Source: Magallana gigas
Taxonomy: Eukaryota
DNA length: 64,000 nt
Direction of reading: 5' to 3'
NCBI RefSeq assembly: GCF_963853765.1
Contig: NC_088856.1
Span: forward strand, 6,200,001-6,264,000
Each line of letters opens with the position of its first letter. Positions within the stretch are counted from its first letter, which is position 1. Below are positions 9,901-15,900 of the stretch, one piece after another. The notes beneath the pieces are model-generated. The model was not told the origin of the DNA. It worked only from the letters and a program-made list of their open reading frames with translations, and did not search any database. The position numbers were made by a program, and so were the translations under genes.

Positions 9901-12900
9901 GTGCTGTGTGTATTGATGGGTACATGTTTTATCAGAAAGGTAAACTGTGTGTATTGATGGGTACATGTTTTATCAGAAAGGTAAACTGTGTGTATTGATG
10001 GGTACATGTTTTATCAGAAAGGTGTGCTGTGTGTATTGATGGGTACATGTTTTATCAGAAAGGTAAACTGTGTGTATTGATGGGTATATGTTTTATCAGA
10101 TGGGTGTGCTGTGTGTATTGATGGGTACATGTTTTATCAGAAAGGTGTGCTGTGTGTATTGATGGGTACATGTTCTATCAGAAAGGTAAACTGTGTGTAT
10201 TGATGGGTACATGTTTTATCAGAAAGGTAAACTGTGTGTATTGATGGGTATATGTTTTATCAGAAAGGTAAACTGTGTGTATTGATGGGTATATGTTTTA
10301 TCAGAAAGGTGTGCTGTGTGTATTGATGGGTACATGTTTTATCAGAAAGGTGTACTGTGTGTATTGATCAAAACTTCATCAATATCAATAGAAAGGTACT
10401 GTGTTTGTTTATTTGTACATCATCAGTATAATAAGAATTGATAGGTAGGTTATCAGTCTGATCATAGAGGTACGCTGTGTAAAGATTATTGGTACATTAT
10501 CAGAATGATACATACTGTAATACTGTATAATAGAAAGTATTACATAGTGTTTGTATCAGTAGTAAGGTACTTTGAATGAAACAGATATATCTCTCTTTAT
10601 TTATGGAATCTGTAAAAATTAACCATGTGTTAGGGTTTGGGTCAAATTGGGTGGACTGAAAATTCAAAGTCAATGTTCTTTCTTTTCTTTTTTTTTTATT
10701 GCAAAATAGTTTATTCATGAATGTCAAAATACATTTGTTGAAACCATTGTATAGTTTATAATTGCATTATTTAAAGAAAAATGCACTGCTCAATTAAATT
10801 TTAAAAAGAAGTCACTCTGCATCATGTCCAAAAAAAAGATTTTGTTCAAACAAAACTACTTTCTATGCAGAAACGTATTGATTATTATACTGTGTTAGAT
10901 TGTGAGAAGTAAATTAAGATTGTAAAGTGTTTTTTGTCCAACCATCTTCACAATAGCCATCATTTCCTCTTAGCAATTAATTTAGACACTTCATGTAGCT
11001 TAGGCAATTTTATTGACAAATAATGAAATAATTTATGATATTTTGGTATTAACTAGAACATTAATGCATCTGAAATTGACATTGGAAATATCAAAATGAT
11101 TTACACTTGGGATGTGCACATGTGAACAAGCGTGTACTTTTGCTGTGGATGTCATAAACAGGAACACTTCCTTCTAAGATCTGGTGAAGTAACTGTATTC
11201 TATAGAACACTGCGGTGTCCAGACAATCTCTAGACGTGGATGTTGCTCAGTAGTGGTCTGTGTGACAGATGTCCGGAGACCCTCACTCCATAGATCAAAC
11301 ACTGATGACAGTGGGCTGATTGGAAACCTGCAGATCAATCCACCAATTGTCACCCTCGGTGTAAGGCTGAGGTTTACACTTGCACAGATAGCCACATTAT
11401 GCTGAGGGACACACAGCGCTAGTTAATGCAACAAATCCATCATTATAGTCTTTAATTGGTTGGACTAATATCTGTATTATAAGGCACTGATACCAAAGTT
11501 TCATGTATAATCGAGAACCAGTGCTCTAATTAAATTTTCTCCAAAGTATAAAACAAAATTGATTTTCTGTATGATTGTGCTTTTAAACGTCAATTAAATT
11601 TGACTCTATTTTTAATCTAGTTCATTTCTTTAATGAGACTTAACTATCTGTGATGAAATGTAAAAATAACTTGTTCCCATTAGAGATTATATTGTACTGT
11701 AATAAAACATAATGTTTACAACTGTCAGTGCTAGGTTGTAATCGTATATAGACACTTGCACAAGCAATCTGTTTTTGTGTTCCTTCGTATGTCGGACATG
11801 GTGTGGCCATGAGCCTTAATTTAGCAGGCCAACCTTTTTATGGGATTATGCATTATTGTCTTGTCAATAAAGAGTAATAAAGCAGACGTGTGGTTTTTAC
11901 CATTCTAGGGGAAGGGAAAGGTGCCTTTAGGGTCAGTATGATAATCTGTGGTTTGTTCTGCACAACTCGTCATAGGCAGGACCATGCCAGTTGTTGGCCC
12001 TCTGAGGGAATTCAGTTAGCTTTGTTTCTTGTGTTAAAATTAGAGAAAGGACAACATGGCCAGTGGTTATACAGAGGATTTTTTCTACAGCAGTACCCCA
12101 GAGAGAAATTTAGAGCTGCCCCCACCTTACGGGGATTTTATCTTCCGTCCTCCAACAAGACGCCCAGTTGTGAAGAGTTCCAAAAGCTTTAAGGACAAGA
12201 AAACGAAAAATAAAGGGAAGGTTCCACCCTCCAGGATGTACGCCACTGTTCGTGATCCGCGGATGGCACCGGGGCATCCCTTGATTCATCCGGATTTCAT
12301 AACACCCCAGCAATTCATTCCAAAGATTGTCCCTCCTGAACCCAAGCCTGTCAAACCAGTCAGGTCCAAAAGCTTTAACAACAGCAAGAAAGCAGCTGAG
12401 CAGAAGAGTAAGCTACAGGACCCGCCTCCATTTATGACATACAGGTGTCAGAGCTACCCCCCTCCTGATGATAAAACGGGGGACCAGCCAGTCCATGTGT
12501 TTTCTGTACCTCATCAAGTTTCAAACCATTCAAAGCAAAGACTAGGCCTCCATGAAGAGTTGTTTCACCCTCCATCCAGACACCCTGCGAGTCCTTCCTC
12601 GCCCCCATATTATGGAACCAGCCTGAGTGATGAGCCTCCAGTGAAGGATAGTTACGGTAGTGGCATGTATGTGCCTTCAAATGAATTGGAGAACAGTTTA
12701 ACTTTGAAGGAAATCAATCATACAGAAAATGAAATTCTTTCAAGCCAAAAACCTCAGAAAAAGAAAAGCATGGTCAAGCAGATTCTGACTAGTCTGTTTT
12801 CATCAAAGAAATCTGGTGAGCAGGGTCATGCAAAAAATGAAAGGAAGATCAAGAATGAAGGAACAAAAACTGCTAGACCTGTCACTAAATCTGAATCCAT

Positions 12901-15900
12901 TGAAGAAAACACAGTAAAGGAGAATGGTGAGGAAAACAATGGACCACAAGAAACACCAAGGTCTGAGGATCCACCACAGGCCCATGAAAACAGCAGTAGA
13001 ATAGGTCGACCCAGTGCCAAGGTCCTGGGACAGAATGACAAACAGGACCAAATCATTCAAGAGCTTAAAAAGAAAAACAGCAATGCTACAAGGGAGGATG
13101 TGGATGTTGAAGAGAATCCAGACCAATGTTATCACTCAAAAGAAGGGAATACAGGCAGGGAAACGAAGGCGGGTGGAGGTGAGATTTCTAGGAAATCAGA
13201 CAATTTAGACACCAGTTTAACATTGCAAGAAAGAGAAAAGCAGAATCGAATGATTAAATCGCAGTCTGTTCCTAGTGATCTGTCCAAACACAAGAGTGGG
13301 AAATCAGCCAGAAACTGAGGGGAACATGGACTATTTATAGGAGATACCAGAGATATTCAACACTCTGTCTGGTACTTGATACCGATTGAGGAAGACAGGA
13401 AAGGGACACAACTCATGGTTCACAGCTTGATAGGGGCTCTGTTCTCTCTAGCTGGATCAGCAGAGGTGGATTTTATGTTGACAAGTTGATATCTTGATGA
13501 ATATTTCATGAAGGTCTCAAATGTCTTTAATATCTGGAATTTGATATTATTTATACCTTTAATCAGGTCTTGCCCAGCTCTGAATCACGGGGAATCAATA
13601 TTGTGCATACCAAAGGAACTCCATTAACATTTGTAGTTATTTTGAAGACATTTCATCAAACTTGGAAAATATCTCCTGGGGAAATTTCTTGGATAAATCA
13701 GCATCAGTGGACAAACTGATTGAAAATTTGATCAGACAGAAATAATAAGACTGATAGAATGACTAAAGAAGAAAAAGGACAAACCAGCTCTTAATTTCAC
13801 CAACTAGACAGTTCTGATTTATATGCATACACTATTACAGAGTTTACTGGTTATTGTAGCACAGTTTATAAGAGTTTTGATGTATTACTACTCTCTATCT
13901 CACCAAACAGTCCTCTGTTCCCTCCGTGTACTTTAGCTCAGTGAGATTACTCGGTGGAAATGGAAGACAGATGTTGATTACACTGTAATGAAGTGAGGGG
14001 ACCTCTCCGTTTGAATCTCAAGAGTCGTTTATTTTTTGTAGAGATAATCTTGATCACCAAGCTGCCTTCTGTTAACAATGTTAATTTTTTGGTTTGCTCT
14101 GGATACAGAATTTGTACTTGATAGATAAAGTGATTTCCCCAAAGAATTAAACGAAGCTCACAAAGGGAGAGGGATAGTTTGTAAATATAAATAGACAGAT
14201 GAGAGACAGGGAATGAGGTGGAATCGGTGTCCAAAAATCTTAATATGTGATATTTCAGGTTTCTTATAGCTGTCTTCAGAGAATATGTGTTTGGCTTTGA
14301 TTATCCAAATATTTACTGATAGTGGTTATTGATTAATTAAAAAATTAAGAAGATAAATTAAATTGTCCATTTGCTTGAGAAGGTATGTCAAGATACATGT
14401 AAAGTGACCTTGACTTGCATTCTGTATAATGTTAAAAGTTGGGTAGAAATTGATTGTAAATACGCTATGTTAATTGGGCAAAATGTTTTGGTGATAATGA
14501 GCAGTGTCGACTATCATGGTAAAGCAAAGGAGCAAGTTGAAGCAGCAAGGCTTTTGAAGTTGTTCAGATAATGATGACTGCCTTCCTTTATTTGCTCAAT
14601 GCAATGTGTTAATGATGACTAAGTTTTATGTTTTTTTATCTTTTCTATATGCATATCTTTTTGTACAGCATATTATTTGTCTGATTCTATCAAATGCTTG
14701 ACTCACAATAAACATATCGGTATGCCATGATAGAGGCCTCTGGGTTGTTGTTTATAGCATTCTAGTACACTGTACTGTTAGTCAGCAGACCATACAAGTC
14801 CAGTCTAAGTCATAAAAAAACTCACAAATGATGGATTGTGAATTAATTTGCTTGGTTTGAGAATGGGAACACTTCCAATCTTTGGACTGATGGAGGTGCT
14901 GGCTGATTAAATAAAGAGATTGGTTTCATCTTCTGCTTATATTGATGGGCAAATAAAACCTAGAGGAAAGGACCAGAAGAGGCTGCATGAAATGGCCAGA
15001 GTAATGAAACAGCTACTGAGTGTGCCAAATTGAATGGGGTTGTCTGGGGTCTACTGAGACGAGGCTGTAACTCAGACCTGTTATAGTAATTTCTTTCCTG
15101 GGTTTTACAGGAAAAAGACATGGAACAATTATTCTTGACCCATTAAACATTTATCTAATGCTACTTAAATGGTGGCACAAACAAGATTGTCTGTATCCAA
15201 CATGACAGAGAGAAATCAATCTATTTCTGCACTGATCTATATCTCTGCAGTATGATGGATTGATTAACGAATTCTTTGACCCTGAAGTCAGACCTATTAT
15301 CATTAAACAGCTCCATTGTCATTTACATTCTTGCAACACAAATTGATTCCTGGCACATAGAACTTTCTATTGATGCAATGAAAACATTTACAAGTTTAAG
15401 GAACTTTTTTAACCTGATACAATCGCGTGTAGAGACACTTGTAGAGATGTAGATGTATGGTAATGAGACATTAACAGTACATGTTTAGCAATTAGTACAA
15501 GTTTGAGGAGCTTTTTGTAATCCGATACAAATCTCATAGAAATGTAACCATAGCTTGACAGATTTTAAAAAACAGATTGATTTGATGTATAATTTGATAG
15601 TTGAAGCAATATTATAACAGTATTTACATACAATAAACATGACATCTGTTTTGTTACAGGAGGGTACCATCCTGTGAAGATCGGAGACTTGTTCAACAAC
15701 AAGTACCATGTGATCAGAAAGCTGGGCTGGGGCCACTTCTCCACCGTGTGGCTCTGTTGGGACATGTCGTGAGTACTCAATACTATAAATAGCCTGAAAA
15801 TGACAGTGTCAGCAGGGTATATTCCTTATCGTGTGGCTCAGTTGGAACATGACTTAAGTGCTTGTTACTATAAATAGCCAGTGGTGTCTCAGTAAAGTAT

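Follow-up and report, generated by a model that had tools for sequence, protein, structure and literature searches.

A single-exon reading frame nested in an oyster SRPK gene

Sense-strand genes nested in the introns of host genes are a common arrangement in animals, with the whole gene contained in one host intron and its position long kept. The stretch of DNA investigated here, subsequently called the window, comprises 64,000 nucleotides of the Magallana gigas genome (assembly GCF_963853765.1, contig NC_088856.1, positions 6,200,001 to 6,264,000 of the forward strand), and all coordinates are counted from its first letter. It harbors an open reading frame (ORF) of 420 codons which likewise lies entirely within one intron of its host, a gene encoding an SRPK kinase, and on the strand of that gene. 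The closest described counterparts are three oyster genes carrying the public label “uncharacterized protein”, namely LOC111105693 of Crassostrea virginica (XP_022295760, UniProt A0A8B8AX75), LOC125653245 of Ostrea edulis (XP_048738568), and LOC134250878 of Saccostrea cucullata. Compared with these, the ORF product is 55–65% identical over its full length and has the same start, the same motif islands, a single exon, and the same location in an SRPK intron and on its strand. We consider it likely that the ORF represents the complete single-exon coding sequence (CDS) of an independent gene, nested in sense orientation in SRPK intron 3, restricted to the Ostreidae, and kept under strong purifying selection in four genera. 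In comparison with nested genes in general, the promoter and the poly(A) site assigned to this gene are putative.

The host was recognized as an SRPK gene on the plus strand because the kinase motifs HTDIKPEN (~18.2 kb) and DLGNA (~22.3 kb) as well as an SRPK-type substrate-loop region (~22.7 kb) are encoded downstream. Its exon 1 (912–936) carries the ATG and is followed by exon 2 (1027–1093, ending in phase 2), by the 101-nt exon 3 encoding an acidic stretch (9617–9717, ending in phase 1), and by exon 4, where the kinase domain starts (15660–15760). Joining these four exons, all on the plus strand, gives a typical SRPK N-terminus, with a basic stretch followed by an acidic stretch and the kinase start. 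Since exon 3, ending at 9717, and exon 4, starting at 15660, flank the ORF, it is located in SRPK intron 3 in sense orientation, in agreement with its placement in the first-pass annotation of the window.

The ORF extends on the plus strand from ATG 12056 to TGA 13318, within a stop-to-stop frame beginning at 12044. It is the longest of the window, the runner-up being a repetitive frame of 205 amino acids (aa). To put its length of 424 open codons into perspective, the segment was subjected to 2000 base shuffles, in which the longest frame averaged 101 codons and never surpassed 241; given the segment's own base composition, the probability of 424 codons staying open is ~2e-11. Because the shuffles top out at 241 codons, the ORF is far beyond chance expectation. 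Its start context, GACAACATGG, features A at −3 and G at +4, bearing out the strong context noticed previously, and an in-frame TAG is found 15 nt 5' of the ATG. The G+C content amounts to 0.42 at the ORF versus ~0.34 in the surrounding intron, and the ORF segment is also A-skewed. A composition count confirmed the described division into a Pro-rich N-terminal half (17.6% Pro) and a Lys/Glu-rich C-terminal half (12.9% Lys and 11.9% Glu).

Orthologues, synteny, and selective constraint

A search of 5.8 billion proteins returned five clusters matching the ORF protein with 55–89% identity, 99–100% query coverage, and E-values from 1e-114 to 1e-241, while the exact protein of the window had no database record. 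Intact single-exon orthologues of 415–486 aa were identified in five further oyster sequences, and three of these are annotated genomes. In these three (C. virginica, O. edulis, and S. cucullata), the orthologue is annotated as a separate single-exon gene inside the SRPK range, its contiguous CDS lying within the range of a same-strand gene that encodes a Pkinase product of 687–721 aa. In every genome aligned, SRPK exon 3 is followed in this order by a short block of conservation, the ORF, the conserved 3' block described below, a further conserved element, and exon 4. For the closest relative, designated L001, a genomic contig of 5.5 kb is colinear with window positions 11341–16760 at 85% identity.

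All six copies of the CDS are intact and contiguous, their lengths being multiples of three and their indels in frame. Between the window and L001, the whole CDS evolves with a dN/dS of 0.17 at an unsaturated dS of 0.26, and the ratio drops to 0.009 within the first 130 alignment columns, corresponding to the N-terminal ~110 residues. More distant pairs gave dN/dS values of 0.11–0.20 with saturated dS. The first-pass annotation had proposed such a comparison across relatives, naming frameshifts and stops in orthologous regions as the outcome that would speak against its interpretation; what we observed is purifying selection and six intact oyster copies. The mean column identity of the six-protein alignment is 65%, and the initiator Met is common to all six proteins, followed by the pattern MASG[YF][TS]E[ED]FFY. 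At nucleotide level, all six copies combine A at −3 with G at +4, and their frame is closed by a stop 12–117 nt upstream, with no in-frame ATG in between. In this respect, the locus specifies an oyster-restricted protein whose first 110 residues are almost frozen (dN/dS ~0.01) across four genera and which is locked in one SRPK intron.

Variation in length is found at the other end of the protein, as the Ostrea and Saccostrea products are ~60 residues longer at the C-terminus than those of C. virginica, L001, and the window. The Crassostrea-type lineage seems to have undergone a C-terminal truncation: with the stop ~60 codons earlier in these three sequences, formerly coding sequence would now be 3' untranslated region (UTR) in front of the conserved 3' block. 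The block itself directly follows the stop in Ostrea and Saccostrea (L006 and L002, respectively) and begins ~150 nt later in the window (13316–13470), L001, and C. virginica.

Outside the oysters no relatives were detected, since a profile of the six sequences searched against 1.84 billion representative proteins recovered only its own family and fragments thereof. A metagenome scan gave no match for the ORF protein, the best score within the ESM Atlas was 0.83 and below a useful level, and no Pfam family was assigned at E≤1. In the 564-Mb genome, the gene has one match and is thus single-copy. Three further database “proteins” (P0035, P0036, and P0037) match the ORF family, with P>L/F/S, T>I, and A>V replacements recurring systematically; they appear to be translated bisulfite-converted reads of this locus and, thus, artefacts.

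Annotations of its relatives have already made this gene public, under labels that assign no function. The earlier description of the ORF as “undescribed” therefore has to be withdrawn in view of the uncharacterized orthologues carried by RefSeq and UniProt. In the literature, no paper was found to name the run accessions or any of these LOC and XP identifiers, and a search for an oyster SRPK with a nested gene brought up nothing relevant.

Weighing of alternative readings

The first-pass annotation had offered three readings of the ORF, i.e., a nested gene, a giant alternative exon of SRPK, and a kinase-less SRPK isoform. The lineage-specific nested protein gained support from the shared initiator Met, the own stops, purifying selection, and the separate annotation in three genomes; the giant exon found no support in the conservation of sites and codons, and the kinase-less isoform is left as an unlikely rival. 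According to the alternative-exon reading, 12091–13178 would be inserted between exon 2 (or an exon at 7770–7831) and exon 4, replacing exon 3 and providing the kinase with ~363 extra N-terminal residues. The observations accompanying this proposal were all reproduced, namely an acceptor-like ttttttctacag|C at 12091, a donor-like GAG|gtgaga at 13178|13179, their spacing of 1088 nt, the phase arithmetic, and a frame staying open for a further 46 codons (46.7) past the donor. The frame compatibility with the flanking SRPK exons is real (phase 2 in, phase 1 out), as exon 2 and 7770–7831 both end in phase 2, as required at 12091, and 13178 ends in phase 1 like exon 3, although such a match has a chance of ~1 in 9 to occur by coincidence. 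Both splice-like sites exist in the window and L001, and the oyster SRPK appears to have alternative N-termini. However, the donor GGT|GAG is confined to these two sequences: the aligned place reads CAT GAG in O. edulis, GAC GAG in L003, and CAG GAG in Saccostrea, all three missing the GT, and GGT GGC in C. virginica, which retains the GT in a weak context. The “acceptor” at 12091 coincides with codons for Phe-Phe-Tyr-Ser, and its AG is lost in Saccostrea (TAT GGC). Furthermore, the first 12 codons, located before 12091, vary among species chiefly through synonymous or conservative substitutions, indicating that they are translated, and the 46-codon tail past the donor contains the conserved islands SRKSD and KSxSVPxDL. 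With unconserved sites and codons outside both of them constrained as coding, a cassette exon replacing exon 3 is unsupported. The relatives also annotate a separate gene of 415–486 aa next to SRPK products of ordinary size (687–721 aa), so that we regard the giant exon as improbable; both sites may still be used occasionally in this species. Drosophila SRPK79D, which reportedly uses alternative N-termini, had been cited as precedent; its oyster parallel is the exon at 7770–7831 and not the 420-aa ORF, which, unlike the SRPK79D N-termini, has its own stop and a proposed donor without conservation. Consequently, the locus holds a lesson for annotation, as frame-compatible splice-like strings within a coding ORF can be misread as cassette-exon boundaries. 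A related scenario, to which we give little credence, is that the nested gene gained the frame-compatible acceptor 12091 and donor 13178 in the lineage of the window and L001 and became partly exonised into SRPK. If true, this would yield a chimeric kinase in which a PPxY-rich disordered region replaces the acidic exon 3, and the host would be in the process of capturing its nested gene.

A kinase-less SRPK transcript would start at the SRPK promoter, use the AG at 12043 as acceptor for exon 3 or a preceding exon, and terminate within the intron, so that the ORF would be its terminal exon and lack its own promoter. This is compatible with a TAG|AG-type element and an upstream T-rich stretch 8–13 nt before the ATG in the aligned species, with the ORF strand being the host strand, and with the putative nature of the ORF's own transcription start. 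On the other hand, exon 3 joined to 12044 leads into another frame with a stop at 12192 (as worked out by hand), so that an SRPK-promoted transcript would not give the 420-aa protein from the SRPK AUG, and the 420-aa frame would be a downstream cistron behind it. The strongly conserved promoter-like block directly upstream of the ORF and the strong constraint on the protein, which implies efficient translation from its own AUG, also argue against this transcript. An origin of the ORF by chance, from a transposon, or as a retrocopy devoid of host function could appeal to its intronless structure, its intronic position, and the lack of a Pfam domain; shuffled frames of at most 241 codons, one genomic copy, the absence of a transposon domain, and an orthologous, syntenic position under purifying selection in four genera leave this with a practically negligible probability. 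The match to a transposon ORF that had been named as a refuting finding was not obtained for this single-copy gene without Pfam domain. Chance ORF, transposon, and recent retrocopy were rejected on the basis of shuffles, single copy, and purifying selection.

Several points weigh against an independent nested gene with its own transcript. Its transcription start, its poly(A) site, and its independence from the SRPK promoter are predicted from sequence features, and the WW-domain binding proposed for its product below is predicted from motifs. The conserved AG 13 nt before the ATG would allow a 5' UTR spliced from SRPK exons. All orthologue-bearing contigs from Logan, JGI, and ENA are colinear with genomic sequence, several of them ending in repeats, and none is usable as cDNA; contig L017, of unspecified library type, covers 12675–14020 without a splice at 13179. 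In favor of transcription, eight runs recorded as RNA, which come from four studies, contained 0.56–0.62 of the sampled 31-mers of 11700–13700, compared with 0.68–0.76 in DNA runs of the same species (probable source excluded), the RNA share carrying no positions and possibly including pre-mRNA or DNA carry-over. As a rough estimate, and if polymorphism costs RNA and DNA runs alike, ~80–85% of the 2-kb stretch would be represented in RNA contigs, which roughly fits a transcript that begins just 5' of the ATG and includes the conserved 3' block.

Flanking elements of the ORF

In the nested-gene reading, translation would start at ATG 12056 and end at TGA 13318, and the transcript would run on unspliced into a conserved 3' UTR. 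The sequence from ~11800 to 13800 forms an island of raised identity to L001 (0.87–0.94) within a less conserved intron, and this identity falls after ~13800. Upstream of the ORF, a non-coding block at 11764–11953 (plus strand), 100–290 nt 5' of the ATG, is conserved across four genera even though synonymous sites are saturated. It contains two AATAAAG TATA-like boxes (11866 and 11876), two TGTGGTT motifs, and one TGATAA motif, and is a candidate promoter that would probably drive the nested gene. Closer to the ORF, the in-frame TAG at 12041–12043 (plus strand) is part of a TTAGAG-like element found in four of the five species aligned. This element may either be promoter-proximal or serve as 3' splice site for an intron in the 5' UTR. 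Within 11937–12192 (plus strand), an upstream ATG located in a conserved TGATAATCTGTGG opens a frame of 85 codons overlapping the main ATG. This would be an overlapping upstream ORF if the transcript starts further upstream, and would be untranscribed if the motif is a promoter element.

On the 3' side, the conserved block at 13467–13620 (plus strand) is present downstream of the stop in all genera and is read as a 3'-UTR element. It is followed by a candidate poly(A) signal region, AATAATAAG, at 13741–13752 (plus strand), where AATAAA occurs at the aligned place in L001 and Saccostrea; the assignment is weak and putative. A further non-coding element at 14826–15054 (plus strand), also in intron 3 and downstream of the nested gene, has conserved counterparts in C. 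virginica, O. edulis, and Saccostrea and comprises GGGAAAGTTTCC, a palindromic, Rel/STAT-like motif, together with two AATAAA. It may serve as an enhancer, act in splicing, or provide the nested gene with a distal poly(A) region. No Rfam family was found in 9718–15700.

Protein motifs and tentative function

The ORF protein is predicted to be essentially disordered, as AlphaFold2 modeling with the six-sequence alignment returned a mean pLDDT of 47, a pTM of 0.15, and only few short helices. Conservation along the six-sequence alignment is concentrated in short islands, i.e., ELPPPYG (invariant), RSKSFN, KQRLGLH, MYVPSNE..SLTL, KKKSxVxQILxSLFSSKK, QNxxQDQIIxELKKKNS, and KSxSVPxDL. The two PPxY motifs and the KS(S)KSF segments reported initially were found again. 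The first PPxY motif, L-PPPY-G (PPPY at aa 22–25, 12119–12130), is invariant in six of six sequences with a pLDDT of ~50, and the second, PPYY (aa 183–186, 12602–12613, pLDDT ~50), is a PPxY in five of six and is lost in C. virginica. Between them lie an invariant basic/Ser cluster at aa 40–54 (12173–12217), beginning with KSSKSF at aa 40, and the likewise invariant RSKSF at aa 103–107 (12362–12376), an R-x-x-S-hydrophobic site of putative basophilic-kinase type by consensus. One short helix is predicted at aa 239–248 (12770–12799) within the KKKSxVKQILxSLFSSKK island, based on conservation and the model, and another at aa 328–343 (13037–13084), also in a conserved island and the only segment with a pLDDT of ~75. 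Past the proposed donor, the conserved KSxSVP (aa 401–406, 13256–13273) resembles the 14-3-3 mode-1 pattern R-S-x-pS-x-P and may function as such. All of these features are encoded on the plus strand.

Class I WW domains bind PPxY, basophilic kinases typically phosphorylate R/K-x-x-S-hydrophobic sites, and [RK]SxSxP is similar to the mode-1 motif of 14-3-3 proteins. On this basis, we tentatively propose a disordered, phospho-regulated adaptor recruiting WW-domain proteins, an assignment that is possible and that we hold with less than even confidence. Such a protein would work through short linear motifs and two short helices, with LPPPY and the second PPxY engaging the WW domains of NEDD4-family ligases or of YAP- or KIBRA-type proteins and with the two [KR]S(S)KSF basic/Ser sites and KSxSVP acting as phospho-switches. 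Suitable WW domains are encoded in the same genome, among them NEDD4-family-like domains. With NDFIP1/2, the ARRDC family, WBP1/2, angiomotin, and dendrin, the ORF protein shares a PPxY in a disordered Pro-rich region, its LPPPY being invariant. In contrast, neither Pfam at E≤1 nor the profile search linked it to any of them, the NDFIP, arrestin-like, and WBP families included, and it has no transmembrane or arrestin domain. By its sequence features it thus resembles PPxY adaptors and belongs to none of the named adaptor families. The locus neatly exemplifies a presumably disordered protein that is taxonomically restricted and under strong constraint, and the invariant PPxY together with the phospho-type motifs leads to a testable hypothesis with WW-domain and possibly 14-3-3 proteins as partners.

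Further features of the host locus

Within SRPK intron 2, positions 7770–7831 (plus strand) represent a likely alternative first coding exon, which starts with an ATG, ends with AG|GTAAGA in phase 2, and joins SRPK exon 3 in frame. Its start, MKCCFH..., is the same in all copies translated, and conservation in C. virginica, O. edulis, and Saccostrea extends over the peptide as well as ~900 nt upstream (6927–7839). Hence, the oyster SRPK appears to possess two alternative N-terminal first exons, encoding MSSKIPRK... at 912 and MKCCFHGLW... at 7770, and the N-terminal Cys-Cys of the latter suggests a lipid-anchored SRPK isoform.

Minisatellite-like tandem repeats occur at 16735–17530 and 30494–31149, in an SRPK intron and further downstream, and give rise to spurious ORFs of 163–205 aa composed of repeated peptide units. 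Furthermore, a repeat of ~165–220 nt at 54560–54778 (minus strand) shows 73–77% identity to a tandem array in the SRPK locus of Saccostrea (L002, 18777–19791), and is probably a satellite or mobile-element family held in common with Saccostrea.

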